Assembly: GCA_964247055.1 (NCBI GenBank)
Contig: OZ176055.1
Coordinates: 4,650,001-4,714,000 of the forward strand
Reading direction: 5' to 3'
Source: Paragordius varius
Taxonomy: Eukaryota > Animalia > Nematomorpha
Length of the DNA: 64,000 nucleotides
This document shows, piece by piece, positions 9,951 to 57,448 of the stretch; the first letter of the stretch is position 1; the number at the start of each line of letters is the position of its first letter. The notes below the pieces were generated by a model, which was not told where the DNA came from, made no database searches, and saw only the letters and a program-made list of their open reading frames with translations. The position numbers and the translations under genes were made by a program.

Positions 9951-17042
<7,092 letters not shown>

Positions 17043-20701: not shown

Positions 20702-23700
20702 TATCATATAAATATTAACATAAACCAAGAATTATCATATATATTAGACATAAAACATGTATTTAATAACCTTTCCAATCAAACCCTGGGCTACACTATC
20801 ACAAAGATTAACAGCAACATCGGCAGCCACATTTTTGCCGATCAAATGTTGTTTGAGTGAATCCAAAATTGGCGTTATATCTGATTGCTCAATACATTTA
20901 TTCGTTGCAACATTGTTTATTAAAGACTTCAATTTAGTGGAGAAAAAACTGCCAAAGCTACATTTGTTCCTTTATAAGTTATAAAAATAAAGGTATAGGT
21001 AAAAGTATATAATAATTACCATTTTATAAAATAGTACAAAATAAAGTTTTTATAAAATACCCATTATCATTTGTTGTGTTATGATCCTTGGATGGCTTTA
21101 TATTTGCAGTTTTAATAATATCAAGATCATCAGAATCATTTTCGGATTGCCAAGACAATGCGTCATCATTTATATCTATTGCTCTCAAATCGCCTTTCAT
21201 AAGTCCAATAACTTCCTACATGTATTAAAAAGAGCATAAATATAAAATATGGACTACACATTTAAAAAAATAAATAAAAAATAAAATATATATTGAATGT
21301 ATTAACTATGTTTGATTAATTTATGATTTAACATTATTAATATAAAAATAATTTACTAAATATAAGTTTTAAATATATAAAAGATATTATAAAAAATAAC
21401 CTTTCCCCCAAATTTTTCAGAAGTTGTAATGTCAGTGGTATTGTTTGAAATATTATCTAAATTTAAACATTCCATTTATAATTCCACTTTGTAAAGCAAT
21501 GAAACAAGTATAAAATTATGTAAAAAGGTTTTCACCTTTAAGTCGCTAATTCTTTATAATAAAATATTTTATTTCAATAACAGCCAATATTAAATTTCCG
21601 CTTAAAAATATATATCCTATGACATTTTAATATAATTTTAATCTATTTTTTATTGATGTATCCTAAAAAAATACCCGGTTCAGAAAGCTTTTTGGGTTTA
21701 GAACTAAAATCCAAAAAATCTACGTCCTTCTCTGTCCCTTCGTTGTCCCATCGACGGGCTTCTTTTTTCTTCAAATTTTTACTGTAAGTGATAATATTAT
21801 TTATATGTTTTATTTATTAATGCTATTATATTAATTGTTAATATTTTTCCATATTTTCTTATTTTTACTCACAAATATTTAAAATAATATTGCTTTGGTA
21901 TGATTTTTGTATGCAAAAAACGCTTTTCTAGAACATAATGATCTTAAAAATGCCTTTTTAATATTTAGTGAATGTTTAAAAAATATTTTTTTGTTATTTA
22001 CAAAAGTGTCGAGATTGGAAAAATTTTAAATTCAAAAAAGCACAAAAGAAAGTACTCATTTTTATTAGCAGCGACAGTTTTCTTTCGCATAGCCGGCATT
22101 TGATTTGATGGACTGCTTAAACCATGTCCGATTTGTAGGGAAGGTGGTAAGATTGGGATTTCGCTTTCAAAATGTTTGGGCTTAGCGATTCCATTAGGGA
22201 CCAGGGGTACTTTTATATGCTCTACATAATTGTGTACATATTTTATTGATAAAAAAACTATTTTATGACTAGCATTAGTTTTAATCAAAAGCGTTAAATA
22301 ATTATATCCAAATTATAAAAAATTATTTTGCAACAAATTAAAAGGTGATTGAGGCAAATAAATATATAACTAAAAATAAATTATAATATGTGTGATGATC
22401 CGTTACTTAATAAACAAATAAATTAATAATTGGTTTAACAGGGAAAATTTTCATTGCAAAGTTGTTAGAGAATTTACTTAAAATGACTGATAATAGAGTA
22501 AGATTAATAAATGATTATCACGAAAAAACAAAAGAAAAACATGATTAGCACATGGTGGAAAAAATATGATACAAATACACCAAATACGACCCAAATGAAT
22601 CCTTTCTGTTGTATCTACTTACACATCTAACAAATATTTTAACCATGTGCGAATCATTTTTTATTTGGATATTCATTTGTTTTTTTCGTGATAATCAATT
22701 ATTAATCTTATGATATCAATTATATATAATTATTCAATTTATAAAGATATTGAATTTATTATAGTCTAAACAGTAATGGTGGTCAAGATTTAAACCAAAA
22801 ACAGTTATATCTTCAATTTCACAAATTTTTTAAAAAAATTATTTTGTCAAAAAATTTGGTTCTATTTCCAGTGCTTTTGGTTTAACTTTTAACATAAACA
22901 GTCAAATTATTGTCTGCCAAAAATATTTATAAAATAAAGGCTTCTCTAAAAAATATTTTAAACAATCAAAAAGTATTATTGCTTCCAAATGGGAAAATTC
23001 CAAAAACTTTTGGTTTAATTATCTAATGTCGTAAGTATATTGCATATTAAAGGGGATTTAAGCATATTTTTAAATATAATTATATAAATTTTATACAATA
23101 TATATAAATTATATATACATATATAAGTTGGTAATTAATAAATTAGTTAGGTAAAAAGGTTACAATAGGAAATGACCAAATAATTTAAATATTTAGGTAT
23201 AAACCTTTAACAACTTCGTTAATATCTTTTGAAGAATTTTTATTAGCATGCGATTTCTTTTTTTCTTTCTCATTTTTAACTTGCTGTGTCTGCTTATTTT
23301 GAATAAAACTTTCAATAGTTTTTTTCGATTTCTCTGACTGCTCAAAAGTACGCATTGGTTTAACAAAATCATTAGAAATCATATTAGAAATAGGCACGTA
23401 TCGCTTTTCGACATCTCTCCATACGTTTCCAAAATCTGCATCAAAATCAAAAGAGCCCATATAATTTTTCTAAAATAAATCTAACAATTACCTGCTTAAG
23501 GTCGTTTTTATATTTGTCACGAAATCTTAGTTGTATTTCATCAAGCAATTTATCCATGTAATTTAAAGACAATATTTTATTTGTTATCACAACAAATATT
23601 AATTCAAACTCATTATCCAATTTATAATTAAGGGCTAAATCCCCATTATAAAAAATTGGAGTGTGTTTGGCCTACGCATGAGAATAAAATAAACCGGAAT

Positions 23701-23885: not shown

Positions 23886-25890
23886 ATGAGCTTGAAAAAT
23901 AATTCTAAAATGTTTATTTCAACTAACGGAGAATATCCAAATATATCTCCAAAAGGTTGTTTTAACTATGCAGTATATATATTTAATTGTTTAGCCCAAT
24001 ATTGATTTACCACCAATTATTACATTGCCCAAAGATAAGTTAAAACAATGCTTGAAAGACGTTCAACATAATTTACTCTTTAATTTAAACCCAAAAGCCA
24101 AGTTATTATAATTTAATTTACAGAATTTTGAAAAGCAACTCAAATTATTCCTCTCTTCTTGACTTTAGTGTACCAGATTGTAATAGTGTCATAAAAAAGG
24201 TTTACAACTTAAAAAACGGGAAAATCATTGGATTTGAAGAGGTAAGTTTTGTATAAAAATAAGGATATAATAAATGACAATATAACTATTCACAATAAAC
24301 ATGCGTCCTCGGAATTATCTAAAATAAGTAAAAAATAATTGTATTATTTAAGATTTTGAGTCACTTTTTTCCGATGCTATAGATTCGACATACGATTCTC
24401 TCCTAACCAATTATAAATTACCAGGTTTTGCTCCTTTTTTATCTCATAGAAATACATGAAACACATTTAACTCAAGGTATGAAAAATATGGATTTAACCA
24501 ATTCTAAGGCTGACGATGTTAATTTACCCGATGAGAGTTGTACTACAAGTATATAATTTAGCTAGAAAAATTGCAATATTCATTAATAATATTTTTTAAC
24601 CAAAAAATTAGAGTTTAAAAACGGTAGATTAGGAAATAATTTAGTTAGAATAATCATTGAAGTATTAAAATTTTAAGGTTTTAGTTGGATTGTCCAAGAG
24701 CATACATAGTTCTAGATCCTAGTATGGCGGTATCACTTTTTATGGTGCCATTAAGTTCTAGAAAAATAAAATTAATTTAAATAATTTTCTAGTATGATAT
24801 CGAAATTCTAAAAAATATGTAGTGTTTTTCAAATTTTTTACTGTTTATAGGCCAGAGGTTATATATCAATTGAAAAGATATTTAATCATATCAACACTGT
24901 GAGGCATGAAAAAGATATTTTTTAATTATAAACATAAATATATGTGGGAAACGGTAAAAGATATTATGGCCAAAAAATATAATATGACTAATTTTTAAAT
25001 ATAAGTATTCTAAATGGTAAAAATTTACTATGTAAGTTTTTTCATTCCATTGTTTAAACAAATTCAAAAGTCCAAATGCCACCTCTCCGCGGTGTTGGCT
25101 GGGGCATGAAAATGCGCTAACGACAAAGGCCAGTTTTCTAATAATATTTAAAATCATTAGTTGCACACAAGCATATGTTTTACGCAATATATCGCCTCAA
25201 TTATCCATGAAGCATAAATATTATGAATATGAATTTTGCGGAAAAACTCCGAATCCGGAGCCTGTTTTTACTCACCGACCTGCCTAAATCCTATTTTTAT
25301 AATTATTTGCCCTCTCATAAATCAATTTTTTAAATGTAAATGATTTATTTTGGCTACAAATGCACATGTATTATATGTGTTAAAAAGAAAAAGATTCTGT
25401 TACATTATTATATATATTTTTGAGACCACTAAATTTTTAATAATTTAATTGGGTTTTCATTATTATATTTTCCCCTTTAATAAATAGGAGATTTACCGGA
25501 CTCGAAACTAGATATTATAAGGCATAAGCCAAAGTCAGCTGTGGATCAAAGCCAAAAACGAAAATACAAGTGGGCCAAAGCAGTCGATTTAATTAATGAT
25601 GCTGATGAAATATCCAACTTTGAAGAAAAGTTAGATTATAAAAAATCATAAATAAACTTTTTAAGGGAATCAAAACCGTTTATGGTCCAATTCCTTTTCC
25701 TAAAAAAATTTTTTTCGTTAAAGATTTTGATTTCTGGTCATAAGACAACGTAAAAAATAAGCCAAAAAATGTAGATATATAGTTAAATGTTGTTTGTTAA
25801 CTGAAAAATTTTAAAAAATTATATATATATATTATCTATAAAATCGAAATTAAAAAATAAGGTAAACATGCAATAAAAACTTAAATGTAT

Positions 25891-25929
<39 letters not shown>

Positions 25930-28900
25930 TATTTTTAAACCTACGGTTGTTTTACAAAAATTAACCTGTCACCGTTTGGTACTAAAATGGATTCAGGATT
26001 GTTTTTAAAACCTATACAAGAATGGCTAATTAGCCCGTTTCTTTAAAATGGTTTCGGTTTTAATCCCTTTATATTTATGCATTCTTTTATGATGTTTCCC
26101 TTAATGTTTCAGATTACCAAATCTTGGGCATTCTTGGCCCTTCACATTAGACGCCTTCCAAAAGCATGCCATTGTCCACATCTCTCGCGGGAACAGTGTT
26201 TTAGTTGCAGCGCACACTTCTGCGGGGAAAACGGTCGTGGCTGAATACGCTATCGCTCTTGCAAAACGAAACAAAACTCGGTTTGTAAAAATTTAATGAA
26301 TGATTATTTTGTTCGCTAGAAACAATTGATTAAATAAAGAATTAATGATAAAAACTTAAGAGATGTTGTATAGCCAAAAAGTGTATTCATCAGGTAAAAC
26401 TTTTAATGAAAACTTTTTCCACAATAAAATCACCGCATTACATTAAGTAATAATATATATATAAAATAAAAATGGTTAACAAATTACAACCTGTTTTATG
26501 CTTAATTTTACATTTAGAGTATAACAAGAACTAAAATTATTTTTATAGCTCAGAAAGATATGTCGATTGTTTCATATATCGCCAAAACCCAAAAAAGATG
26601 ATATTTGTCGGCGCCAAGCTTATTTTTATTTGTTACAAAAATAATTTAAACACGATTTCTGATTGTAGCCTTTTACTATCATAATATTTCCTATCTTAAA
26701 CTCTTACGATTCAAGTAGTTTGATGATTTACTTAAATATATGACGCTAATTGTTTTGTTTAGTGTTGTTTACACATCACCCATAAAAGCTTTAAGCAATC
26801 AAAAATATCGGGATTTCAAGCAAAGATTTGGCGATGATATCGGTCTTATCACAGGTGACATTTATCTCAAAGCGAATGCATTTTGCCTTATTATGACGAC
26901 AGAAATTCTCAAAGTTATGTTATATACTCATGACGATCTCATTTCCGAACTTGAATGGGTCATTTTTGATGAGGTATACGTTTAATAGATAACCAAAAAT
27001 TCTATTTTATAAAATCGACTGCATAAAATTTATTTTAAAATAATGCTTTCAATATTTGTGTGAATCTTCAATACTTAACTCGATTCCTTTTATTTATATA
27101 TTCTATTAAACGGTACCATTTTTATTATATATTGTATTTTTCGCTTATTCGAATTCGACAATTGGCTAAAATACAATGACACTATATTTTATTAGGTTAG
27201 ATGTTATAAATCATATATGCCTGATTTTTTTTATTAATTTACATGAAATTAAAGAATGTTGCATTTTTTCTGTCTTTGCAAAGGTTCATTACATAAACGA
27301 TGAAGAAAGGGGTGTTGTATGGGAAGAGGTCTGTATTCTCCTGCCATCTCATGTCAAAATGATTTTTTTGAGCGCTACTGCCCCAAACGCATTAGAGTTT
27401 GCCGATTGGATAGGTTTTATACCGTTTAATTTCTTCAAATTATAAGGCTAAACGTAAAAATATTTTTTAAAAAGGACAGCCATACTTTTTTAAAGTTGAT
27501 TTTCTCTACAGTTAGGGTTTCAAAGGAATTGAAATATAAATAAATAACACTTTAATTATACATTCCACTTTTGTAAACATAGTTTTCATAGATTAAATAA
27601 GGTTCAAAAAAGTATAGATGTCTAAAAACAATGTTTTCATCATAGTCCCTCTACGTTTTAGACTATGTAATTTCTTAATGAATCTTTCATCTTTTCTAAA
27701 TATTAGGGTCCATTAAAAACAGACAAATTTACGTTATTTACACAACAAAACGTCCAGTTCCACTCGAACATTTTCTTTACATATCCAATTTGCCTGATCA
27801 AAAGCCCAAATTGATAGCGAAATTGCCAAAGAAAAGTATGCTGATATACCATTTACAATTTAATTTCACCCTTAAACAATTCAAATTCACCCTCAAATAA
27901 ATAATATGTTTTTTAAGATTATAAATTACCTATATTTTATATATTTTTTAAAAATAAAAATTTTGTTTTAAATTAAAATAATACTGAAAAAATAATAAAT
28001 TATACCATAAACATATATTTCATATTAATAATGAGTTATATAGTTTGAAAACACATAATTTATTTTTAGGGTGAATTTAAATTGTTCGAGGGTGAATTTG
28101 AATTGTTCAGGGGTGAATTTGAACTGTAAATGGTATATTCCAATTTTATATTTCAAATAACTTAATACTATTATATTGATGGTCTTTATAACAATGACTT
28201 CTTTTGAGTTACTGCCGGAAATATGATGTCGACATTAATATAATAACCAAATTTTCATATGTACTTAAAAAATTATATATTTGTTTTTTAGCAAACACTC
28301 ATTTATACCATTTTTGTTAGTTTTATATATTTTAACTATAAAATCAATCATATAGAAAAAGGTGGATTAAACCATGTGAACAATCACTTTAGTAAGGAAA
28401 TCGCCTTGAAAGAAGCAAATCATAACGAAAATAATTCTAGTACAGGCGATATAGCAGTCTCAGGTCGAACTTTTCTTTTAGTTGATTCCAACAATCAATT
28501 TTTAGGCGAAAATTATCGGGACGCCAAAACTAAATTGCAGGTTTTTTTACAATATTTAATTGTTAATGTTTAAAAAATTGTATAACAATTAATTTTAAAT
28601 TAATTATGCCATATGCAGTTTGTGTATTTTTTATATATAAAAATATAAAACATTGTGTTCCATTTTTAAAAACCTTGCATGATCAAATGAATATATTACT
28701 TGAAATTAAAGCCTTTTTTTAAAAATGTATTAAACATTTCAAAACTGATGACAATAAACTTTGATTTATGTCTGTCATTTTAAAAAGATGAATTTTATTT
28801 CTTTTAGGTAAGATAGGACATTACAAATTGGCATTTTAATTGTTAATGCTTCTGATAAATTCTGTTATTTTAGCATTAAAGATTTGATTTTTATAAATAA

Positions 28901-31900
28901 ACAGCTTATAATTGCTGATTCTTCTATAGATATGCTAATTATTCTAAGGTTTTTACAAGACTATTCAACATGTTTGATATTTTTTAATTAAATATTTAGT
29001 TATATACCAAATGAAGATGTTTGATTAAAGCTTTTAGTAACTGATACCAGATTAAGAACAAAATTAATTCCCTATGTAGTTTTAATAACAAAATAAAATA
29101 AATACAGTTGTTTTACCACACATATCTCCTTTAAATATAACAGTTAGATATGATATTCTGTTTACAATGTTACAACCAAATTGCGTGTTTAATCTAATTA
29201 AAATTGACTCATCTTTTATGATTTATACATTTAACATTTATTGTTTACATAAATATATCAGAATTATAATTAATGTTTTAAAAATTGTATTGTTTTTAGG
29301 AAACATTTGAAAAAATTAACAAAGCCACTCTCATCAGATATGATAAATCTGCAGCACAGAATCAACCCTCATCACAAAAAAATAATCCACAAGATCAGTT
29401 CAAAAAACATTCGAATTCTAAACCGGCTGGAAATATAGCTCCCAAAGGAGGCGGAAAACATGGACCTAAGTTCTCTATTTTTTAAATTAATGATATAACA
29501 AAATGCCTACAATTTTTGGGTGCCGACCCATTTTTTATCTCTTTTGTGTAAAGTAATTTTTTGTGTTTTTTCATACACCTTTACGCACATAAGTAGCTTA
29601 AAATTTTAGTTTTTTATTCGACATCACCCCACATGGAAACTAACAATAAACCTGGTTGTCCTCGTTTAACTTGGGCTAAAGAGATTGATAAACTGCTAAA
29701 AACAGATTGTATTGATAAAGAATTTTTTCATAAGAAGCTGGATAGTTTACAATGGATAGATAGATAGATGGCTGGTGTCAAGGGGCCCCTTTGCATCCCG
29801 TCGTGACGGGGTTTAGGTGTTTGATCATTGCATTGAAGGAATTTTTGTTTAACCAGTCCCCGGCTTTTATGTTTTTTGGCCTGTAGGTATTGGGTAATGT
29901 TTTTGTCCCATGTTATTGCTGGACGAACAACTCTGTTTTGTTTGTTTGGCTCAATTTGTTATATTTTTTATCCAATTGATGGAGTACCATCAAAACTTAT
30001 TGTTAAACAACAATATCAACATAGGATAAATATAAATATGCCAGATACATCTTGCTAACAAGCCATTTTTATATTTTTTTTTCCTAATTATGCTAACCAA
30101 CGAAAGCATGAGATATATAAACCTTCATATTTTTATTATTTTTGTAATCCCCTGTTTTTGAAAAAGAGAGTTTGTATATATTTTTAATTATGTCCCGATA
30201 AAATATAATTATTTAGGCAAATTACACTAACTCCATCATCTCAAAGTTCTAGTCCTTCCTTGGCACCCTTGCGCGATAAACGGGTTTGGATAGATTTCAT
30301 TAAACATTGTCAAACATGGAATAAACTGCCTGCCGTCGTATTTATTTTCAGTAGAAAACGCATTGAACACATTGTACAAATGTTGTTGGAGAATTCGGCT
30401 GCTGACAACCTTAATCTCACCACCAAGGGAGAAAAGGCAAAAATTGAAGTTTTTTGTCGGAAATGCATTTCAAAACTTAACCCATTAGATCAGGAACTTC
30501 CACAGGTACTTTTCAATTGTTTAATTTGGTTAACATATAAATTTCTCCTTGGAAAAGGGTAAACGTGTCTCATGTAAATTATTCTTTTTTTTCTCTGTAA
30601 AACTTTTTAAACACCCATTTTCAGGGTATTGAGAATTGTGAGCTAAAATATATGCATGTAATAGTTTATCATACTAAACGAGTAGTGATTATTCCGTTTA
30701 GCACTGATTTTAATATAAAGAAACATTTTAATTTGAAAACCTACAGCGTTTTTATGATGTACAAATTTTTTTTAATTCCGTAGGTGATTTACATAACTCG
30801 CTTGTTACGGACTGGTATAGGAGTGCATCATAGCGGAATCTTACCCATCCTGAAGGAAATGGTGGAGTTTTTGTTTCACAATTCGTGTGTTAAAGTTCTC
30901 TTTGCAACAGAAACGTTTGCTATGGGACTCAATATGCCAGCGAGAACGGCGGCCTTTGAGCTACTTCGCAAATTCGATGGCACCGGTTTTCGAAATTTAG
31001 CGCCCGCCGAATACATTCAAATGGCGGGTCGTGCTGGTCGAAGGGGTATGGATACCACGGGCGCAGTTTATCTCCTATTTAAGGTTTTCTTTTTTTTTGC
31101 AACAAGAAATCGGTTTGATATTTTCACAAAAAATATGATTTTTTATTGATAGTTGAATAAGTTTATCATGACTTTCGAGCACATAGTGTATAAAGTTTAC
31201 GGATTTTTTTACAAATTGTTCTTGTAAATAATTTTCTAGTGATTTATATATTTTTCAGAACATTCAAAACTGGCTTCTGCTGTAAGTTCACTATGGAAAT
31301 ATGTGATAGTAGGACATTGTTGGGCATAATATGTTATTATCTTTTATAAAAACATTAGGATTGTATTATGGATGAAATCGATTTAAAGATGATTATGTTG
31401 GGTAAACCGGCTAAACTTGAATCCAAATTTTACCTAAACTATGGTATGATACTTCATTTACTCCAAAATGCAAACATTAAAGCCGAGGATATGTTGCGCC
31501 GAAGTTTTGCTGAATTTTATCATCAGGCGAATACTGGTATATTAATATATGTATACTTTATAAATATATTAATAATATGAAACGCTTATAAATTAACCTC
31601 AAGATTTTATAGAGTATTTGGGTGGAGTGGTATTGATATAAAATTAGTTTGGCCCCGCCAAAATTTTTGAATTTGTTTTACGGTCACAAAATTATTTAAT
31701 AGAATAATAATCCATCGATATTTTTCTGTTTCGATTTTATAGAAAAGTGGTTTAAGAATAAATAATAAGAAATATTTTCTTTCTATAATACCAATTACTT
31801 TAAATTTAAGATATGACTTTATATGTTTTTATTCTATCTTTAGGCCTTATATATTCAGAACGAAAGTCCTATATCCCTATCTTATTTGTAAAACATTGAG

Positions 31901-34900
31901 CTTTTATACATCTAAATTTACTTTTATCCATCCAGATTTATAATTTGATCGCATGTGCGATCTGGTTTTGATGGCCAGCAGAAAAACCAAAATAATTTTT
32001 GATTATTTTTATTAAAACTCAGTTTTATTACAAATAACTTAATCTAATTTTTAATTTTTTGTATCCATAATAATAGTTAAGACAAGGTATTATGCATTTA
32101 TTTTTGTGTATGCTATCCACTAGTTTGACAAATAAACTAAAGTAATATTTAGATCGTTTTTAAGAGTCCAATGAGTTTGCAAAAGATTGTCTTTCCAATA
32201 ACAAATTTTAAAGTCATGTTGCAAATTTAATTATTTGATTGCAGGCTTTAGACTGGAAGAATTGAAAAATGTGATGGAACGCATACAAGAACCCGAACCT
32301 TTCTTATGCAAACTTTGTTCAACTGATATTGATTTGTTTTACAAGACTTTTTGCGATTTCTATAATCTACAGCATAGTTTTATGGTACTTTGTCGTTTAG
32401 ATATGATGATATATTGATTGTATCAATTATATTTACTTTATATTTTATTACAGAACAAATTATTTTGCTATAAACGCCTATTTGAAATACTATGCATTGG
32501 TCGCGTTATCATATTTAAACTAATGCATTCAGATCTGCTAAATATGGATATGATAAACTCTAAAAATCCGAAACAAACTGAAAAAGCTCTTTCCCCCTTA
32601 TTGGCCAGTAATGATTAGTTTTGAATAATGCGAAACCAAGCTTTATTTTGATTCTTTTTTCTTGCAAAACGAAAATTATTTTTTATATATCCACCCAAAT
32701 TTTTAGAAGATTCTGAGTCAAAACAAAAGTCAAATAGTGCATATACATTATGTTTGGGTTTAATTCTCAAAACTAACCGGCATTTGAGTGTTCCCCATCT
32801 AAAGGTTATCTATATAAAACCTAAGAATATGTGCCAAAGAAATTTGGATCTCAATGCGTTCCTTAATGAGGGAACTTTAAATGTTGGACATCTCATAGGC
32901 CAGGGTTTATCTACTGGCACCGCAACAAACGATGCATTTAAAGATTTAATAGCCAGTCTAAATGATTATCTCACCATATTGGTTCAAACTGATCAATTTA
33001 TAAGGAGCAATTTTTTACCTCACATTCCACCAAACTCTATGAATGCCAAAATAAATAATGGTTAATATTATATATAGTTTGTCAATCTCAAAAACCAAAT
33101 TTATTAATAAAACTGGATTAATAAATGCAATTAAAAATTAATTGACGACGACCGGTTTTGTGAAACCGGAACCAATACCGAATCTCAATTTATAATCGAG
33201 TACTATGTATACAGCATTAACCCTGTTACATGGTTTTCCTCATTACTTCACATACTGGGTTGTTTTTATAAAAATAAATCAATGATTGATAATTTAAATG
33301 GTAATATTTTTAAGTGTTTTCTAGTTTTTTAAACATTTGTATTATAAATTTTAATTTGTGATAATGATTATATCTCTAAAATTCATTTATATATATTTTA
33401 AGCTCAGTTAATTGGAAACATTCATATTTATAATTTATATTTTATAGAATATCACGATAGGATTGGCATTTTAGAAATCAAAAACTTCCAAAACATAATC
33501 TACATTACTCATCTTAACTGCCAATTGTACAGTGATTCCATTTTACACCAATACAGAAATATAAAGACACGCTCATCATTAGCTTCTTTATCGATGGCGG
33601 GAAAATTCAATACTAATAATAACAATCCGACCTGCCTAACAAACCAAAATCAAACTGATCTCAATAGTGATTTTAACGCCTTTTTTCACTTTGTACCACC
33701 CATTCTTGAACGAATTAAATGTAAGTTTAAATATTTGACATTTTAGATTTTATTTTTATTTAAATATCATTTAAAGCCGATGTATTTTTTTTATCAAACC
33801 TTATAGTTTAAATTTAAAATTTTTATGTTATTATTAAAAAGATGATATCGCTTCCACAACATTAAATCAAGATACTAATTCCCTGTTCATATATGGGAGT
33901 GACAAAGCTATGGGCTTTAGAATTAAATCCAAAGCGCCACATAACTTTGGTTTGAATAGCAGATTGGATGAGATTCGAACATCCATATTATCTCCAACAG
34001 GTCGTTCATGTTTAATTTCAAATTTAACATTATATCTGTAGTTTTTGTAATTATTTCTAGGGTGTGATCTTACTGCTTAGGAAAGCAACCAGATAACATT
34101 TTTAAAGATAGGGCGTTATAGAAATTATTATAAAATAATGGTATACAATATATAAATAATTATATTCAATTTTAACAATTCATCCAATTTTAGTTAATTG
34201 TTATTAAAATTATTATGAATATATTTAAAACTCATTTTTTTTCTTCAATTTCGTTTTATTTTAATTAGTTGTAACGTATATTTCCGTAATCAATTATATG
34301 TTGGCCGATCTAAAGAGCATTATATTTCATCATAGATGTGAAATCTACATGTAGTACAGGAAATTCTGAAACTAAAATCATAAAAGTTGCCTCACATCAA
34401 TGGGAAATAGATTTGGAACTTGAAGAAATGCTCAAAACACTCAGCGCAAAAATTAGATTGGCTCGAGATTTTAGGTGTGTTAAATCGTGTCCGGCTTTGG
34501 TAATTATATTACAAATTTTGTTTATTATTTGTTGTTGTTGTTGTTGTTTGCTAAAGTCGATTCCGACTAATTGCAACATTGAAAAAATGGCTTCTCCATT
34601 CATTGCGATTTCCGGTTTTGGTGTTTAGGTCGGATAAGGATAGGTTGGTTTCTTTAAGGATGTTATCCATCCAACGAGTTCGTCTTCTCCCTCTTTTTCG
34701 GGCACCACTCACTTTCCCCAGCATCAGTGATTTTTCAAGTGAGCTGGATCTCATGATGTGCCCGAAGAAGGAGAGTTTTTGCCGTGTTAAGCTGCCAAGA
34801 AGTGACATTTCTGGGTTTATTTTATTTAGAATGGTGGTGTTTGAAACTTTGTCTGTCCATTTTGTTTGAAGAAGTTTTCTCCAAACCCATAATTCGAAAG

Positions 34901-37900
34901 AATTTATTAGACGTTCATCATATTTTTTCAGTGTCCAGCTTTCCCCCCCATACATGAATGTGGGGAAAACTGTAGCTTTGATTAATCTGATTTTGGTTTG
35001 TAGTTTAATGTCATGTGACATCCAAATCCTGTTATATTTAAAAGTTACTGCTTTAGCAATAGCAATTCTTCGCTTTATTTCAGGCGTAGAGTTGTTCTCA
35101 TTATTAATAATGCTACCTAAGTACGTGTAGCTGCTAACTGTTTCGATCTGGTTGCCGTTGAGGATTATTGGATTGGTTTGAGCCGGATTTATTTGCATGA
35201 CTTTTGTTTTTTTGAAATTGATATTTAATCCAAATTTATTGCATTCAGTTGTAAACACTTGCAAAGCTTGCGATAATGTGTCTAGACTGTCTGCGAATAA
35301 GACTGTATCATCCGCGTAGTGAACGGATGTAAGTAGGTTCCCACCTACGTTGATGCCGTAAGTTTGTGGGATATTTCTTATAATGCACTCCAGGTATGCG
35401 TTAAAAAGAATTGGTGATAAAACGCATCCTTGACGGAGGCCGACTTGTACCCTACATGGGTCAGATATACCGTATGGTGTGGATACTATAGCCGTGGAAT
35501 TTGAATAAATTGAAAATATGATTTTGATTAAATGTGTTGATACTCCGAGTTGTTTTAGAGCTTTCCGTAGTTTATTGTGCTGGGAATCAAATGCTTTGGA
35601 AAAATCGACAAAGCACATATGCAATTCTTTGTTAAATTCGATGTGTTTCTCGATTATCCACCTCATGTTACATATCATATCTCGGCATCCTCTACCTTTT
35701 CGAAAACCAGCCTGAATCGTGGATATTTCCGGGTCAAGAATGGAATTTAGACGAAATTGTATTATTTTTAGAAAAACTTTGGACACCTGGTTTATGAGCG
35801 CTATGGTGCGATAGTTGTCACACAGTTCTGGGTTACCCTTTTTTAAAATCGGAATCATAATGGATGTACACCAATCCTCAGGAATTTTTTCCATCTTAAA
35901 TATGATTTGAAAAAGTTTGGTGAGTATATCGATTGGAATGTATTTTATTATTTTAGTAGGGATGTCTTTGTGGCCCTCTGATTTACCGGTGCTAGAGTGT
36001 TTTATGGCGAGTTCCACTTCTTCTTTCATAATAGGTGGTTCTTTTTGTTTAGTAAGTTCGTTAATAGTTGGGGGGTTATTTACATTGTATAGTTTGTTTA
36101 TATGTTTGTGCCATAGTTTGCGAATTTCGTCTTTTTCAGTGACGATTGAGTTGTTGTCGTTTCTCATAGGTCCCTTATAAAAAACTTTTTTGTGTGGAAT
36201 AATATTGTTTGCATGGGCAAAGAGGTTTTGGTTATTTTTGGCGTCTGTTTCTAATTTTTCACATAGTTGGTCATAATACTTATTTGTGTCCTCTCTTGCA
36301 CTCTTCTGAAATTCACTGTTTAGTTGTTTGTATTTATCCCATTTGCATTTGGTTTTTGAGTCTCTACACTTTTCTGCGATCTCTAGACTTTTGGCTGACA
36401 ATTTCATTTTATTTTTATTGCGTTTGAGAGGCCGAATGAATTCGTCGGCTGTGTCTCGGCAGATTGTATATATATCGTTCCAAAAGAAGTTTATATCCAG
36501 ATAGTTTTCGGAATTATGATCAAGACAATCGAAACGATTTGATAAAGCGGTGCTAAACTTGTCGTCGATTGTATCATAATCTAATCTTGTTCTTGTGGGT
36601 TTGGATGTTTTAGGAAGTTGTAATTTAATTCGGAGTTTGGCGATCAATAGGTTGTGGTCGCTGTAGCAATCCGATCCTGGTAGGCATTTGACATTTTGAA
36701 ATGAACTTTTGTATTTTACCATACCTAATATGAAGTCAATCTGGTTACGGTATCTTTGACACGGGGAACGCCATGTGTATAGACGTCGTTTGGGCTGTTT
36801 AAAAAAGCTGTTTGCGACGAAGAAACGATGGTTAGCACAAAATTCAATCAATCTGTCTCCTCTCTCGTTTTTTAAGCCCAAGCCCATGCCGCCCGTCATA
36901 GGAGGTGTTTTGTCTGTTCCGATGATTGAATTAAAATCGCCTAAGATAAATATATCCTTTTTTGAAATTTGGGAAATCGCCAAGTCGAGATCGCTATAAA
37001 ATTTTTCACAGTCGTCATCGCTGTAAGAGGAGGTAGGTGCGTAAATTTGAAGGATAGTAATGGGTTGAGGGGTTGTATGCATGCACAAGTTAATTAAATT
37101 GTAATTTTATTATTGAGAGATTTTTATCAGCTAATTTTATAATACCCATATTTAAATAATTACTGTTGTAAGGACCGATACATCTTCCTTTTTTGTCTTT
37201 TAAGATTTCTTTAAGAGTTATAAGCCGTGGAAGCATTGTGTCTGTAAATCAGTTATTAAATTTATCCATCATTTAAAACATTGTTGCATCTGTTATTTGG
37301 ATTATAATTATTAGAAAACGGGTAATCTATTTAAGCAAATGTTCCTTTACAATTTAGACTACAACACATTTTGCAAATTTTGTGGCCGGTATGGACTATC
37401 AAACGAAAAAGAGCAAATTGGCAGAATTAGCGAAATCTCTTATGATTAAAACAACCATTATAGGCAATAGTACTTCGAACGAAGGTGGGAGTCTTTTGGA
37501 AAAAGCTGGTGGAAATATATCGATTGCAGATAATTATGAAGATATGCAGTTTCTCCCTGAATATCAACAACGAATCAAAGTATTTACATTTTTAGATTCA
37601 CATTTAATTTTGACAACTTTACGTATGAGATATATTTACAATTATATATTTATATTCATTAATAAACATTATTATACATCAACACGCCAATATTATGCAA
37701 ATTTATACCATATAAATAATATATATTTTTTGTGAATATTTACTAACTAATTAAATGGTTTGACACGCAATATTTATAGATTTTATATTTTTTAATTTTT
37801 ACTAAATTCACGCATGTAAATAACCAGACAAATAAAATTTACTTACACCGATTATCCCCATGTGAATTTTTTTATATTTACGTTTTATGCAGAGGGTAAA

Positions 37901-38880
37901 TTTATTATGGCTGATTAATAGGTTTCAGCATAATTTGATAAACATTACCAAATATTTAATAAATTTTATTGATGAATTTTCGTTAAATGCAACTGACTTT
38001 TTCAAATTTAACGAAAATAAAATATAAATCTTAATTTATATATATATATATATATTATATATATATATATATAGGTACTTAAAGAGTTAGATTATATAGA
38101 TGCCAATCTCGTGACTCTAATGAAGGGCCGAGTAGCTTGTGCCATAACAAACGCAGAAATCGTTTTAACTGAACTTCTTTTTTGGAATTACTTTGAAAAT
38201 TTGGAACCTGAAGTTATTGTTGCCATTCTTTCATCCATCATTTGTCAAGAGAAACATCTCGTTACAGAATCCAAAACTCCCGAATTGTTTGTGGTAATAA
38301 GATTGATATTTTTGAATTTTTACTTTATTCATTTATTACAATATATTGTAATAAAATATTTTTAGCATAAAGAAAATTTCTTGAAAATCGTTAGCAACAT
38401 TGCTTTAGTCGAATCCAAATGTGGCCTAAACTCGCAAAACTTTATGGATTCCTTCAATTTTGGGATGATGGAAGTTGTTTATCAATGGGCTAAAGGAAAG
38501 GTTATTGGGGATTTTAAAAAAATAATGTTTTTACCAAGGGTGTCCAACACAAATGTCTTTGTCGCGGGTGGCTTTTTTGACCAAAAAATCCAGTGGGCCG
38601 CATTTGCAAAATATATGGGCATTTACAAAAATTTTATTAATTTTATTGTTTACTATTTTCCTATCTTGGATCTTAGAGTTTTAAGGAGATCACGACTCTC
38701 ACAAATGCTCAAGAAGGTAGTATAGTTCGATGCATTCAAAGGCTCGAAGAAATTTGTCAAAATTTACGTAATGCTGCAAGACTGATTGGCGAAACAAATC
38801 TCTATCAGAAAATGGAAATCGCATCATTTAAGATTAAACGGGATATAGTTTTTGCTGCAAGTCTATACACTTTGGATTAA
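23886..38880 (+). CDS. SKIC2 (SKIV2L): SKI2-type DExH RNA helicase (Ski complex), multi-exon
   Basis: Ski2 N-terminal similarity ([15 protein letters not shown]), [32 protein letters not shown]|[78 protein letters not shown] (stop 38878-38880). ATG is 23886 or 23910. Exons between ~24570 and 25490 are unresolved. Confidence 0.95.
27845..28137. mobile_element. TIR element with 21-bp subterminal tandem repeats (family copy 1, SKI2 intron)
   Basis: Ends tataccatttaca ... tgtaaatggtata. Inverted arrays of gaacaattcaaattcaccctt-like units. Central ~200 bp nearly identical to 54186-54556. Confidence 0.8.
29752..30005 (-). mobile_element. Decayed 3' fragment of a non-LTR retrotransposon (RTE/RTE-X-like)
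   Basis: Minus strand reads NKF*WY...[13 protein letters not shown], resembling the RLRWFGH...RGRPxxTW C-terminal motif. It ends in an (ATCT)n tail at 29752-29770 and has in-frame stops. Confidence 0.55.
34529..37088 (-). mobile_element. 5'-truncated RTE-clade LINE (partial AP endonuclease + reverse transcriptase, 845-aa open frame) antisense in a SKI2 intron
   Basis: QIYAPT, ILGDFNS, YTWRSP, NQIDFIL, SDHNLL (APE); [37 protein letters not shown] (RT); [13 protein letters not shown]-terminus. A (CAA)n tail starts just after the stop. The ORF begins mid-endonuclease. Confidence 0.95.
38038..38072. repeat. (TA)n microsatellite abutting a SKI2 splice acceptor
   Basis: Interrupted TA run ending in the AG at 38073-38074. 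Confidence 0.9.
38535..38605. mobile_element. hAT MITE remnant (one end only) in the last SKI2 intron
   Basis: caagggtgtccaac resembles the family TIR caggggtgtccaac, followed by gggccgcattt. No partner TIR found. Confidence 0.5.
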
Positions 38881-43360: not shown

Positions 43361-46300
43361 TTAACTGTAGTTACGACAATTCAATAGTTTTATAAAGGCT
43401 TGTTTGAAATGTACATTGGCAAGGGCATACATAAATGGATTCAAGGGACTGTTAAGATAGCATAACCAATATGTAAAAGCGTAAAAATGTGGATTTATAT
43501 AACAGGAATCACAAAAACCCCAAATTGTTTCCAAGATGTGGTAGGGTGTCCAACATAATACAAATGCTCCCATTATACATGTAATTGTCCGCAATGCCTT
43601 CTTTGCTTTAGTGTTCTTTTTACGCTTTTTCGCAGCACTAATTAGCGCCTTGGTTTTTGCAGCCGTGTACATGTTGGATTTCAATCCACCTCCCGGCCAA
43701 ATAGAACTAATGGCACTACTCCCCAATTTAAGGCTCCCCAATTTAGAAGAGGATGACGAGGTAGATGTTGAATGTTTTATGGTTGATCCTTTCTGTTGTG
43801 ATTTTGAAGGATCTGGCACATCAGATGATTTTTCTTTAGCGTTTAAGGAATCATTGTTTTCCGTATTACAAAAGTTTGTTTTTTCGTTAGTACTTTCACT
43901 TAATTGATCATTCAGCAAATCGGTTTCGTTTATTGATTCGCTCTTTCCCTCATCTTGTGCATCTGCAATCTCATCGGCTAAATCTTCGTCATAACTTATT
44001 TCCTGGTAGTTATGCTTTATTTTTTTATTACTTATTTTAATTTTTACGGAACGTGTTGGTTTAAAATTCTTTGAAAGCGATTTCACGTCCGGTAATGCTG
44101 GTAGTAATTTTTTACTAGAAGTCCTGATCCAAGTTGATTTGTCAGTTATTAAATTGTCTTTTGTTTTTTCCTTTTCAGTCATATATTCATTATTCTCTGA
44201 CGATATAGGTTTATCTTCACTTTGATTTGAATATTGAGTAACAACTTCTTTTGGATGATCTCCCCGTTTACTATTTTGATCGTGAATATTATTTGTCAAG
44301 GTCGTATTTTTATCAAGTAAAGTATCATTGGGTACTATTAATAAAGATTGGCAGTTAGATGCATTTTTCAAAATTTCTCGATTTAAATGATATCCCGTAG
44401 TGGCTTTTGGTTGAGTATTAAAATCAAATGAGTTTCTTATATTTGGGTTAAATGCATTATTACTTAAATTATTTTTTTGTAAATCTATCAATTCATCTCT
44501 ATCAATTTCTTCATGCATTTGGTCGTTGCCGTATGGGGGCTCGTATGCATAGGGGAAATAGGAAAACGGTTTGAACTCAATATTTAATGGGTTTAAACCG
44601 CACGAATGTGCTATAGATCTTTCATTCCTTAAAGTATTAGCTTCAGTATGTTTTTTATCTTGAAGTACATTATTTAACATATCATCATCATATGGATATG
44701 GAAAATCCATACCAAAAGAAGATGTTTTAGGTATTCTGTAATTCTTTTTATTGGTTTCATGCAAAAGCTTATGTGAAAATTTGCGCAACAAATGTGGATT
44801 TGGAAGGGCTCGGCGCTTTTTTTCCCTCGGTATAAGAGGTTGGCCAACTTGGTTAATTATTTTACGATCGGTAGATGAATTCTTTATCCCGCTATTAGGA
44901 ATTTGGGAAATAGAACTTGTTTGCGGATTAGATATTTGTAAATTCCTTTCGTGTGTGATTTTATCACCAAAAAATGAGTTTGTATTTGTCAGCCTTTGTG
45001 TACTAATAAAACTTTTGTGGCCAGGAGTTTCTAAGTTTTTAAATATATTTTTATCATTTTCTTTGTTAATTTCTACCTCATTGGCTATATTTAATGGTGA
45101 ATCCGTCATAATATTACTTGTTTTACCTTCTACCACTTTATTTTGTGACGTACAATCTATAAATTCGTTCATTGATTCATGATTTTTTTGATTATCATTG
45201 AGATCCCTAGGATCTTCCCGTGATGGTGTCTCTAATTTTGTTTTACCAAATTTATTGTTTGACTTTTTAGAGTTAATTATGGGTGCAAGTGATTTAAACC
45301 TTATATGTTTTGCATGAACTGATTTTAAACCAGTTAAATTAGGCAAATTATTGTCCCTGGTTTTACCATTCTTATTTATACCGATGGAACTTTGTGCCAC
45401 ATTTTTGAGAACAGAAGTTAGTTTGTTGGATGAAGTTGGTTTATTAAGAGGATGTGATTCGCTGATTGGCTCAAGGAAACTTCGATGAACCACTTTTTTG
45501 GGTAAACTTGGTTTGTGTCCTATTTCGGTATCATCGTCATCATTATCGAAATCATCTTTATGGTCGTCGGTATCTATATCTTCTGGCTTCCCGAGTAACC
45601 TTGTAAGTTTTTCAGTTTGTTTTTCATAACGTCGCTCTTCATCAGAACTTCGCTTTTTGTCAGTGGCGCCACTCATTCCATGAATAGGGAAAGCTGTCTT
45701 TGCTGTTGTAAATATAATTTGGTTTCCTTTTAGTAGAGTGCTTTTAAGTTTTCGATTGTCACTTTTTTTAGCCATAGTGTATGCCACACGATAGATCCCA
45801 TAGTACAATATTAATAATATAACAAGTGACACCCAAAAATATGCGAATATTAGAGCTGTGTTGAATATTTTATTGTTTCTGAATGGTACATAACATTCAT
45901 GTAAACCACGCGTTCGTTTTCCCGTTATAAGTGGCCAGCCTACGATGGAAGTGAAAAATATCCCAAAGGAAAGGATCCATACAAAACATATAAGAAATTT
46001 GAGTTTAGCTTTAGTTCTCCATATCCTATACTTAGCGGGAATCCGAACTGAACAAAATCGGTCGATAGTTATGAGTAGAACCGTATATTGCGAAACTAAA
46101 CAAGCTGTGTAATCGGTAGTTAGCCAGAGATCACAGAGTAATGGCCCCAGGGGCCAAAAATCTAAAAGTAGATAAAGCGTGTAAAATGGCATGGAAAAAA
46201 GTCCGATTAATAAATCAGAAGCAGCTAGTGACACGATGCAATAATTATTGGGCTGACGGATACTAGGCTCTCTTAGAAATGCCAAAATTACCATAATGTT

Positions 46301-46567
46301 CCCGATAACTGTTACCAAGCATAAAATTCCAACTAGGAGCCAGATTACGATTTCTTGCCACAATAGAAAAGGCTTGTGGCCTATGGTAGCATTAATGGTA
46401 GTGGGCAAACCAAGGGTCGTAGCACCCATCAATAGCGAGCTATTGAAAATTAATTTAGAATTATGTGAATTATTATTGTTCATTGATGAGGATAAAGGAT
46501 GTGTGAGATCCAGTGAAGTAAAATTTATAATATATTTTTTGGTTGATGCTAGCAAATTATTCGACAT
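43361..46567 (-). CDS. mAChR-B: Muscarinic acetylcholine receptor, B-type, intronless CDS, 1068 aa
   Basis: GN in TM1, SLAASDL in TM2, LCDLWLTTDYTACLVSQYTVLLITIDRFCSV (D3.32, DRF), CWTPYH in TM6, YWLCYLNSPLNPFMY in TM7. The third intracellular loop is roughly 720 aa. Which Met is the start is uncertain. Confidence 0.9.
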   Translation of the reverse strand: MSNNLLASTKKYIINFTSLDLTHPLSSSMNNNNSHNSKLIFNSSLLMGATTLGLPTTINATIGHKPFLLWQEIVIWLLVGILCLVTVIGNIMVILAFLREPSIRQPNNYCIVSLAASDLLIGLFSMPFYTLYLLLDFWPLGPLLCDLWLTTDYTACLVSQYTVLLITIDRFCSVRIPAKYRIWRTKAKLKFLICFVWILSFGIFFTSIVGWPLITGKRTRGLHECYVPFRNNKIFNTALIFAYFWVSLVILLILYYGIYRVAYTMAKKSDNRKLKSTLLKGNQIIFTTAKTAFPIHGMSGATDKKRSSDEERRYEKQTEKLTRLLGKPEDIDTDDHKDDFDNDDDDTEIGHKPSLPKKVVHRSFLEPISESHPLNKPTSSNKLTSVLKNVAQSSIGINKNGKTRDNNLPNLTGLKSVHAKHIRFKSLAPIINSKKSNNKFGKTKLETPSREDPRDLNDNQKNHESMNEFIDCTSQNKVVEGKTSNIMTDSPLNIANEVEINKENDKNIFKNLETPGHKSFISTQRLTNTNSFFGDKITHERNLQISNPQTSSISQIPNSGIKNSSTDRKIINQVGQPLIPREKKRRALPNPHLLRKFSHKLLHETNKKNYRIPKTSSFGMDFPYPYDDDMLNNVLQDKKHTEANTLRNERSIAHSCGLNPLNIEFKPFSYFPYAYEPPYGNDQMHEEIDRDELIDLQKNNLSNNAFNPNIRNSFDFNTQPKATTGYHLNREILKNASNCQSLLIVPNDTLLDKNTTLTNNIHDQNSKRGDHPKEVVTQYSNQSEDKPISSENNEYMTEKEKTKDNLITDKSTWIRTSSKKLLPALPDVKSLSKNFKPTRSVKIKISNKKIKHNYQEISYDEDLADEIADAQDEGKSESINETDLLNDQLSESTNEKTNFCNTENNDSLNAKEKSSDVPDPSKSQQKGSTIKHSTSTSSSSSKLGSLKLGSSAISSIWPGGGLKSNMYTAAKTKALISAAKKRKKNTKAKKALRTITCIMGAFVLCWTPYHILETIWGFCDSCYINPHFYAFTYWLCYLNSPLNPFMYALANVHFKQAFIKLLNCRNYS

Positions 46568-54185: not shown

Positions 54186-54556
54186 TATACCATTTACAGT
54201 TCAATTTCAACAATTTAAATTCACCCTTGAACAATTCAAATTCACCCTTGAACAATTCAAATTCACCCTCGAACAATTCAAATTCACCCTCAAATAAAAT
54301 ATATGTTTTTTAAGATTAAAAATTACCTATATTTTATATATTTTTCAAAAATAAAAGTTTTGTTTTAAAATAAAATAATACTGAAAAAATAATAAACTAT
54401 ACCATAAACATATACTTCATATTAATAATGAATTATACTAGTCCGAAAACACATAATTTATTTTTAGGGTGAATTTGAATTGTTCGAAGGTGAATTTGAA
54501 TTGTTCGAGGGTGAATTTGAGTTGTTCAAGGGTGAATTTGAACTGTAAATGGTATA
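54186..54556. mobile_element. TIR element with 21-bp subterminal tandem repeats (family copy 2)
   Basis: Ends tataccatttacagttcaa / ttgaactgtaaatggtata. About four 21-bp units on the left and three to four inverted units on the right. Core shared with 27845-28137. Confidence 0.85.
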
Positions 54557-55283: not shown

Positions 55284-57448
55284 ATGATTGAAAAACTTAC
55301 ACCTGTACCCGGGGAAAAAGATTGTAGAATTAATAGCTATATTGATCGGGTAGTTCCAATATAATATTTAGCATGAAAGATATAAAGCTGAGGCCAAGGA
55401 AAGTGAAAGTGATATAGTTTTTATCGGTGACTCTTTGATAGAGCATCTACAACAAACTGAGGTATTTTTTAAATTAAAATTACAGATTTGGGATGTTTTT
55501 AGCCAAATGCATGCCTTAAATTTTGGGATGAGTGGAGACAAAACGCAAAATGTCTTATGGCGCTTACAAAACGGCGAACTAGCTTTTGAAGATTATAAAC
55601 CTAAGGTTTTTTATAATTATATAAATACAAATCTAAAATTCCTACGATAGCGTTGGTCTTTAACGTTATAATTAAAAGTTTTTTTCCCATAATAATCAGA
55701 GCTTTCTTTTGCCGAAAATATTCTTGTTAATTTTTTTCTATTATCATACAACTTTTGTATTTTTATACACGCTATTACATCTTGTAACCTAAACTAACCT
55801 AATGGAAACTAACCCCTAAATTTTTTGGATATAAGATATATTATTAGTTGAGTTTTATAACATATAGATAATTCATTCTGTTAGAATATAAAAATTAAAC
55901 ATGGTAGAGTGGTTACTGCGTTATTATGCTTTGTCTGCTTGAGTATGTGACGGTTAAAACCAGTGGTACTTTTAAAATTTTTAAAGGGCCATAAAAATAT
56001 TATTGAAGGGCCATAATACCGGTTAAAATGATTATAGCTGTTTGGCACATTTGCAGATATTTATGTTCAAAATAAGTACATCGATTTTTTTTCAAATAAT
56101 TTAGGGCCATAAAGGCATTTTGCATGCGGCCCGTGGGCCGCGGTTTGAGTACCAGTTTAAACCCTGAATGCGTCATGATTTTTTTATCCAAACAATTTTA
56201 TCTTTTAGGTTTTTGTTCTCCTCATCGGAACTAATAACGAAGAAAATACTGATGATATTGTCGATAGCATAAATGATATCGTCAATTTGATCCATCAAAT
56301 TATTCCATCCGCCTATATATTAATATTGGTAAATTGTGATCATTTTTTAAAATTCTACTATTACTTATTGGATTAATCAGATTGGGCGCCTAAATTCTGT
56401 CAAATATATTTATATGGTTAAATTCCAATATAAATGAGTTTCTCACTTGTCAAAAATAATATTAGTCTGTCCGATAATGCAGTCATTCATGGTTATCACT
56501 AGTCAATTTATACCACAAATATAAATATATGTAGTCCATTTATAACTCAAAAACAGAATTTGATAATTATACTTTCATTCATAATATTGATACAAATTAT
56601 TGACATACAAATTTACATTTTTATATGTAAATTTTGGAAAGTTTATTAAGGATTTATATCTGGTGATAAATATTAGGTTGAAAAGACTTCTCCGATTAAT
56701 ATTTAAATTTACAGTTGTGCTCCAATTCAGACCTAACCCAATTTTAATAGATTTATTCTTTCAAAACCATTTCCGTAACCAAAACATCCAAATTATCAAA
56801 TTCTTAGTGCAATATAAATTTTTTGTAATATTATTATTACATATTATTTTATATAATTTTTTTTAAAGATTTCATTAAAAGTAGCAGATGTATGACACGG
56901 CCTTTATTTTTATTTTTTTGCGGCTAATTATTTAAAATGTAGATTAAAAATATGAAATTATAATTGGACCATAAATTTAACTGTATAAAATTAATGAATT
57001 AAATTTTTTATAAATATTAATTTTTTCATATATTTTACCATTATAAAAAATTAAAACTCTTTAATCGTTTTAGAAATTATTTCCCAAAGGTCTTTACCCT
57101 TGTCCCGAGCGGGAAAAAATAGGCGTTATTAACAAGCTTCTAGCACAACGTTTCGGGACATTTAATGACACACTAATACAAGCTGTTGCCAATAATTCTT
57201 TACAACATAACCAAATTACTGTAGCTAATCAACAGCATTTCAAACATGGAGACCAATATAAATCTCAACAAATTCAACTTTTAGATTTGGATCCCGGTTT
57301 TGTTCAACCAGATGGTCGCATCAGCCATCTCGATATGTACGATTATTTGCATCTCACAAAACGTGGTTATGAAAAAGCGTTTGGTCCTTTGGTAGAGCTT
57401 TTGAAGTCATTATTGGAAAATGAGTCTCCTCCCGATACCCAAAACTGA
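55284..57448 (+). CDS. PAFAH1B2/3: Platelet-activating factor acetylhydrolase IB catalytic subunit (SGNH hydrolase)
   Basis: Exons 55284-55349, 55372-55461, 55486-~55604, ~56209-56327, ~57074-57448. Motifs: DIVFIGDSL, HALNFGMSGDKTQNVLWRLQNGEL, LIGTNN, DMYDYLHLT. The Ser/Asp/His triad is present. Confidence 0.9.
55961..56154. mobile_element. hAT MITE in a PAFAH1B intron
   Basis: Left cagtggtactttt, right gcggtttgagtacca (terminal bases eroded). Flanks gttaaaac / gtttaaac. Confidence 0.65.

Follow-up and report, generated by a model that had tools for sequence, protein, structure and literature searches.

In a survey of 51 animal genomes, dated September 2026, introns shorter than 30 nt were found only in myxobolid myxozoans and in Dicyema japonicum (PMC13644364). 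More lineages with introns below 30 nt are predicted by the same work (PMC13644364). Median intron lengths in myxobolids are between 22 and 27 bp, with a value of 22 for those having the shortest introns (PMC13644364). For D. japonicum, mean intron length is 38 bp, in a genome of 67.5 Mb with 49% repeats (PMC6736024, PMC13644364). Outside animals, introns of Stentor measure just 15-16 nt (cited in PMC13644364). Our literature searches found nothing linking hairworms with ultra-short introns and, among hairworm genome papers with readable text, there is no mention of introns.

The DNA analysed here, called the window throughout, is a 64,000-nucleotide stretch from Paragordius varius with a GC content of ~27%. 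At the 5' end of one gene, SKI2, are five GT..AG segments of 22-25 nt. We conclude that these are very probably genuine GT-AG (U2-type) spliceosomal introns, shrunk to this size and presumably excised from RNA. Below, we describe the locus and compare it with the systems above.

The SKI2 gene and its five short segments

Judged by its sequence, the gene is SKI2, encoding the superkiller complex helicase, and is both intact and colinear. Briefly, individual ORFs of the window, still unspliced, gave colinear matches to a profile of 71 full-length SKI2 sequences, starting at profile position 42 (24001) and ending at position 1247 (38871), and Pfam DEAD matched exons 26105-26293 and 26779-26982. 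When the 92-residue Helicase_C exon was compared with 1.8 billion representatives, the best match was Gordionus 'superkiller complex protein 2-like', with 80% identity. Other matches had 73% identity or less. Database searches gave no identical protein, and the window species is thus judged to be a gordiid related to Gordionus sp. m RMFG-2023 but different from it. We compared the gene with SKI2 loci of Gordionus sp. m RMFG-2023 (XP_065321899.1), Priapulus caudatus, and Lottia gigantea, with proteins mapped exactly on the genomes. The features are as follows, with the five segments named introns A to E in keeping with their probable nature.

23886-23972, plus strand: SKI2 exon 1, 87 nt; the ATG at 23886 is the first after an in-frame TGA; ends in phase 0
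23973-23994, plus strand: intron A, 22 nt, phase 0, GTATAT..TTTAG
23995-24101, plus strand: SKI2 exon 2, 107 nt; size common to Gordionus, Priapulus, and Lottia
24102-24123, plus strand: intron B, 22 nt, phase 2, GTTATT..TACAG; in-frame stop within
24124-24241, plus strand: SKI2 exon 3, 118 nt, ending ..NGKIIGFEE; size equal in all four species
24242-24263, plus strand: intron C, 22 nt, phase 0, GTAAGT..ATAAG; in-frame stop within
24264-24327, plus strand: SKI2 exon 4, 64 nt; the counterpart, 70 nt in Gordionus and 115 nt in Lottia, begins and ends in the same phases
24328-24352, plus strand: intron D, 25 nt, phase 1, GTAAAA..TTAAG; in-frame stop within
24353-24424, plus strand: SKI2 exon 5, 72 nt, phase 1 at both ends, as in Gordionus and Lottia
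24425-24449, plus strand: intron E, 25 nt, phase 1, GTTTTG..CATAG; retention causes a frameshift and then a stop
24450-24548, plus strand: SKI2 exon 6, 99 nt; donor GTATAT at 24549, with an alternative in-phase donor at 24537
24549-25490, plus strand: intron after exon 6, ~942 nt; high-copy repeat at ~24994-25300
25491-38877, plus strand: rest of SKI2, with helicase core, arch, and DSHCT exons, identified with Gordionus SKI2 as query for tblastn and for the spliced aligner; introns that could be placed reliably range from 69 to ~2,860 nt
~34500-37357, plus strand: LINE-bearing SKI2 intron, ~2.9 kb
34554-37088, minus strand: LINE-type retrotransposon ORF, 845 aa; Pfam RVT_1 1.1e-33 and Exo_endo_phos_2 1e-05

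An earlier, sequence-only reading of this DNA had reported the five GT..AG segments, and each was found with the coordinates and sequence that it gave. The reading also held that translation through any segment meets a stop codon. This is indeed so; stops are inside introns B, C, and D, and within ~10 codons after introns A and E. Note that neither 22 nor 25 is divisible by three. Hence, with the frame shifted by any retained intron and a stop soon reached, every one needs to be removed precisely for the protein to be made. With all five removed there is, as had been claimed, a single open frame. This has 182 codons, extends from the ATG at 23886 to 24548, and is preceded directly by the in-frame TGA. 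The introns have an A+T content of 68-88%, compared with 71% for the exons. For intron A, no in-frame GT donor other than that at 23973 is close to the conserved acceptor. Exon 1 has weak similarity to the N-terminus of Gordionus SKI2 and, because of this, assignment of the intron A donor rests on frame logic.

Beyond exon 6, the next profile match is at 25529-25633, on the 3' side of the 942-nt intron. The repeat in this intron has a word depth of ~91,000, against ~450 in the flanks. Later introns that could be placed reliably measure 483, 482, 310, 293, 622, 278, 275, 708, 69, 120, 495, 72, and 176 nt. Among reliably placed introns, SKI2 therefore has two size groups, one of 22-25 nt and the other of 69 nt and above. 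The sequence-only reading had described several multi-kb, transposon-filled introns in the gene. One such intron (~34500-37357, containing the LINE ORF) was verified, and the plural was unsupported. No SKI2 profile matches were found inside the LINE ORF interval, 34554-37088.

Homology across the junctions and intron sites in relatives

We prepared an N-terminal profile from 113 SKI2 sequences, with nematomorphs left out. Against this profile, the spliced peptide reached 29.1 bits (single-target E = 3.6e-11), and none of 2,000 shuffles went above 7.8 bits. The alignment, covering residues 32-111, is ungapped; it reaches from exon 2 over junction B to exon 3, and over junction C into exon 4. 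The expectation that removal of the segments would reveal Ski2 N-terminal similarity is thus borne out by a match across junctions B and C. Conversely, the motif 'LLT..LPG', cited previously, proved to be a product of unspliced reading, and the conserved animal LLS..P..GM motif sits 3' of intron E. Even before splicing, the ORFs of exons 2 and 3 match abutting positions, 42-75 and 74-116, of the 71-sequence full-length profile. Pfam Ski2_N (PF17911) was below threshold on single 5' exons, which are short and divergent pieces. Gordionus SKI2 is itself marginal for Ski2_N (12.2 bits, for a cut-off of 23.1, E = 0.16).

A purpose-written protein-to-genome spliced aligner was also used, with Gordionus SKI2 and 15.4 kb of the window as input, and no prior intron information. 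At the 5' end, exactly these five introns were chosen. When alignment was restricted to the 5' region, all five were recovered with SKI2 of Gordionus and again with that of Priapulus. With Lottia SKI2, three introns were recovered whole, together with the intron A acceptor and the intron D donor. Spliced-alignment scores were above all 100 shuffles for each of the three orthologues (z = 5.3, 3.5, and 3.5). Identity to Gordionus SKI2 is poor in exon 4 (2/17), exon 5 (4/22), and exon 6 (9/26). Note that the low intron penalty of the aligner produces spurious micro-exons in divergent regions. Micro-exons at 24612-24661 and 24685-24754 were dropped, because 24552-24645 is absent from one haplotype. 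Those at 28712-29075, 32944-32955, and 34792-36059 were dropped because profile support was absent.

We then placed the five introns beside those of the relatives. The 5' exons of Gordionus SKI2 are 25, 134, 107, 118, 70, 72, and 41 nt, and its introns begin, in order, 44, 40, 37, 43, 128, 55, 1,666, 916, and 928 nt. In Priapulus caudatus, the 5' exons are 48, 107, 118, and 187 nt, with introns of 2,326, 471, 228, and 323 nt. The corresponding values for Lottia gigantea are 114, 107, 118, 115, and 72 nt for exons, and 432, 228, 276, 399, and 482 nt for introns. Intron lengths at each site are given below.

Site A: window 22 nt, Gordionus 40 nt, Priapulus 2,326 nt, Lottia 432 nt; directly 5' of the 107-nt exon
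Site B: window 22 nt, Gordionus 37 nt, Priapulus 471 nt, Lottia 228 nt; alignment column and phase the same in all four
Site C: window 22 nt, Gordionus 43 nt, Priapulus 228 nt, Lottia 276 nt
Site D: window 25 nt, Gordionus 128 nt, lost in Priapulus, Lottia 399 nt
Site E: window 25 nt, Gordionus 55 nt, Priapulus 323 nt, Lottia 482 nt

The phases at sites A to E (0, 2, 0, 1, and 1) agree in the four species wherever an intron is present. Loss of the site D intron from Priapulus is apparent because the 187-nt exon equals 115 plus 72. Since position and phase are conserved in Gordionus, Priapulus, and Lottia, all five tiny introns are at ancestral bilaterian sites. These ancestral positions and phases, with the match of the spliced product to the SKI2 N-terminus, support the view in the sequence-only reading that the introns are real.

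Gordionus SKI2 is a close comparison. It has the same five sites and phases, and the same gradient from short 5' introns to long 3' introns, at larger sizes. Its genome, with a GC content of 26.9%, is like the window. However, the 5' introns of Gordionus SKI2 measure 37-128 nt, with none below 30 nt, and those of the window species have shrunk further, to 22-25 nt. In addition, the 1,666-nt intron 7 of Gordionus has no counterpart in window SKI2.

Splice signals and alternative explanations

Contigs from four DNA runs read straight through the tiny introns, and one contig spans 23958-24304 with zero differences. Since four DNA runs carry the segments, assembly error is excluded as their source. 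In the list of variants for a second haplotype, those at 23906 (exon 1) and 24308 (exon 4) are both synonymous, and exon 6 has two in-frame 3-nt insertions, at 24495 and 24506. The same list includes four substitutions in intron D and two in intron E, and for neither is a change in length listed; together, this is 6 substitutions in 50 nt. A 94-nt indel polymorphism, 24552-24645, is located just past the donor at 24549. Words from the locus were sought in the RNA runs listed under the same species label and none were found; the runs that contain the locus are all DNA.

Three of the introns have a 5' GTA and two have GTT, with GTW the only element common to all. A full GTAAGT donor occurs once (intron C), as does a pyrimidine tract (intron E). 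The U12-type 5' consensus, [GA]TATCC(TT), is in none of the five. In 4/5 introns the ninth position, counted from the 3' end, is an A, which by itself is not significant; by our own estimate, ~9% of AT-rich random sets have the same property. The window was also scanned with Rfam, and no snRNA was matched.

The likeliest mechanism would be canonical U2-type splicing of minimal introns. In this scheme, ancestral bilaterian introns would have been kept at their original sites, and in their original phases, and shrunk in place. Presumably, recognition involves a 5' site reduced to GTW, the AG at the 3' end, and the A ~8 nt upstream of that end, which may act as branch point. Retention of any single intron would truncate SKI2 ahead of the helicase core. 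From the intact and conserved gene, we infer a spliceosome, in this lineage, able to handle such introns.

Logically, five GT..AG pairs could arise by chance in AT-rich DNA, or from indels introduced by assembly. In the window, with its GC content of 27%, random GT..AG pairs joining open stretches of at least 25 codons are as common as control pairs, and one such candidate, in an ATPase gene (11603-11623), is false. However, 5/5 introns coincide with orthologous intron sites in three other species, and both profile and spliced-alignment scores are above all shuffles. The same segments are also present in DNA contigs of four runs and in the second haplotype. We consider chance and artefact effectively refuted, with a probability close to nil. 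Removal by a route other than the spliceosome, namely somatic DNA elimination, a tRNA-type endonuclease, or ribosomal bypass, is just as improbable. All five introns have GT..AG ends, and in other animals the same sites, in the same phases, are taken by ordinary spliceosomal introns. The segments are also kept in the DNA runs, whatever the tissue.

The 5' exons might instead be a decaying relic, with the functional transcript beginning downstream, for example before the helicase core, such that the tiny introns are never spliced. Exon 1 and exons 4-6 are weakly conserved, Pfam Ski2_N is under threshold, and the runs that contain the locus are of DNA only, all of which would fit. Yet the lengths of the 107-, 118-, and 72-nt exons are exactly kept, along with their phases, the frame is intact once the introns are taken out, and the profile match over the junctions is both ungapped and significant. 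Similarly, listed variants in exons 1 to 4 are synonymous, and those indels found in exon 6 preserve the frame. A relic would not retain GT and AG at all ten ends. Hence, we judge this explanation very unlikely. Less readily dismissed, but still unlikely, is that the introns are real and removed inefficiently or conditionally, so that many transcripts would be unproductive and the tiny introns would be a brake on expression. This is compatible with our main explanation. The splice signals are minimal, with GTAAGT and a pyrimidine tract each in 1/5, and very short microsporidian introns are poorly spliced (as cited in PMC13644364). Conversely, SKI2 is a single conserved housekeeping gene, and any one retained intron truncates the product. 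The SKI2 N-terminus is required for assembly of the SKI complex.

Tiny introns beyond SKI2 and in other lineages

SRPRA, the neighbour of SKI2, is divergently transcribed and contains a similar intron.

23470-23491, minus strand: 22-nt GT..AG intron in SRPRA, joining ORFs of 60 and 94 codons

The flanks of this intron match Pfam SRP-alpha_N at 22-77 and 87-167, and are colinear. In the Na/K-ATPase gene, a 21-nt candidate at 11603-11623 was rejected; the real intron extends from 11603 to ~11933. This intron, and another at ~11356-11489 (~134 nt), are ordinary; tiny size is not universal among 5' introns. Inspection of PAFAH1B identified candidate introns of 22 nt (55350-55371) and 24 nt (55462-55485). 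An ORF-joining census of the window, with thresholds from 25 to 40 codons, gave no enrichment of GT..AG over 11 control dinucleotide pairs. The census is uninformative on the existence of a class; exons beside the tiny introns are 21-39 codons, which is below noise. A genome-wide class of tiny introns is thus an extrapolation that we infer from a verified base, in the window, of SKI2 and one SRPRA intron.

Gordiids are probably the third independent animal lineage, and the first among ecdysozoans, with discrete 22-25-nt introns. These would be mainly at 5' ends, beside kilobase transposon-bearing introns, in a repeat-rich genome. If true, intron miniaturisation would be uncoupled from genome compaction. 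It would also point to a position-dependent constraint, 5'-proximal and perhaps co-transcriptional, and to a spliceosome for which ~22 nt is the strict minimum. Such a class, once confirmed, would demonstrate that introns of ~22 nt can be processed by an animal spliceosome beside multi-kb introns in one transcript. It would also provide a natural shrinkage series, at identical sites, of roughly 2,300 to 230 to 40 to 22 nt.

There may be consequences for annotation. Gene finders with a minimum intron above ~30 nt would cut short many genes at the 5' end, or put them out of frame there. In the submitter's model of Gordionus SKI2, exons beside the 37-43-nt introns are lost. Misannotation of tiny introns may be part of the reason for low BUSCO completeness (Gordionus, 71.6%) and for calls of 'gene loss' in the phylum.

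The SKI2 introns follow the pattern described for animal introns below 30 nt, being of that size at conserved positions, with a reduced 5' signal and a weak 3' signal (PMC13644364). Myxobolids share the 22-27 nt range, the GT-AG ends, and a 5' signal that is down to approximately GTa. The SKI2 signals resemble the reduced 'GTa ... AG' type of myxobolids and Dicyema. In those animals, upstream A residues are weakly conserved, to which the A near the 3' end of four SKI2 introns may correspond. In myxobolids, however, short introns are the genome-wide median, in compact and TE-poor genomes of cnidarian parasites. In the window, they are in the 5' part of a gene, in a repeat-rich ecdysozoan. Furthermore, myxobolid splicing has been checked with long reads, whereas that of the SKI2 introns is predicted from DNA. 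Dicyema is likewise an animal parasite with introns below 30 nt, reduced splice motifs, and a repeat-rich genome. It differs in having a small genome with short introns throughout and, since it is a spiralian, an independent origin is indicated. A search of the literature for a parallel in the small 5' introns of Schistosoma gave nothing.

Further afield, introns of Paramecium are ~25 nt and those of the Bigelowiella nucleomorph 18-21 nt. Such ciliate and nucleomorph introns are also canonical GT-AG, narrowly distributed in length and far below the minimum that is usual in animals. Unlike the window, these are unicellular systems with uniformly tiny introns; SKI2 has two size groups within one animal gene. 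The SKI2 locus is an unusually clean case, with intron positions conserved across four species. What would set the hairworm introns apart is their ecdysozoan lineage, their 5'-end location, and the long transposon-bearing introns alongside.

Divergent neighbours and other reading frames

SKI2, the plus-strand RNA-helicase gene with five introns of 22-25 nt at its 5' end, and its neighbour SRPRA are divergent, with the SRPRA ATG at about 23679 on the minus strand and the SKI2 ATG at 23886. Since the start codons are only about 206 nt apart, a shared bidirectional promoter is likely. Elsewhere in the window, candidate tiny introns fall in a PAFAH1B-like gene, and longer open reading frames are also present. 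These features are as follows.

55350-55371: candidate GT..AG intron of 22 nt, PAFAH1B-like gene
55462-55485: candidate GT..AG intron of 24 nt, PAFAH1B-like gene, in frame and stop-free
43364-46567, minus strand: ORF of 1,068 aa, uninterrupted, whose product has a 7TM domain of the rhodopsin family (7tm_1, 1.1e-56)
59052-59564 and 61846-62358: nearly identical pair of 171-codon ORFs, spaced by about 2.8 kb

The 1,068-aa ORF is a GPCR gene without introns, in a genome that is otherwise intron-rich. A Pfam search with the 171-codon pair returned no match; the pair is a recent tandem duplication.

Repeats and an indel in the SKI2 introns

Repeats occur in the SKI2 introns and elsewhere in the window.

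27855-27897, 28068-28127 (inverted) and 54209-54290: short arrays of the 21-nt unit ACAATTCAAATTCACCCTCAA
34554-37088, minus strand: LINE ORF of 845 aa, with endonuclease and reverse transcriptase, apparently intact, within a SKI2 intron

In the DNA runs, word depth for ACAATTCAAATTCACCCTCAA reaches about 3 million, compared with about 450 in the flanks. This extreme abundance marks the unit as either a satellite or the terminal repeat of a transposon. Note that one SKI2 intron holds two of the arrays, inverted relative to each other. The first ordinary SKI2 intron also contains a high-copy repeat (24994-25300), with a word depth of about 91,000 against about 450 in its flanks.

Immediately 3' of the exon 6 donor, one haplotype in DNA run X1 skips 94 nt (24552-24645). 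This is an intronic indel polymorphism. A micro-exon placed there by spliced alignment was rejected, because the 94-nt stretch is missing from that haplotype. In DNA run X3, which carries a different organism label, the SKI2 locus is covered at only 3-6x depth and with near identity. This run could be a mislabelled sample, a mixed sample (for example, host and parasite) or a sibling species.

Comparison with Gordionus SKI2

At the Gordionus sp. m RMFG-2023 SKI2 locus, phase-0 intron 7 (1,666 nt, L001:3915-5580) apparently has no equivalent in window exon 6 (24450-24548), which seems unbroken at this point, though the alignment there is weak. The difference would reflect either loss in the window gene or gain in Gordionus. 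Upstream (L001:3001-3914), the submitter's protein, CAK9303687.1, lacks a 107-nt exon and part of a 118-nt exon; both are present in the RefSeq twin, XP_065321899.1. Hairworm gene prediction is already misled by introns of only 37-43 nt.
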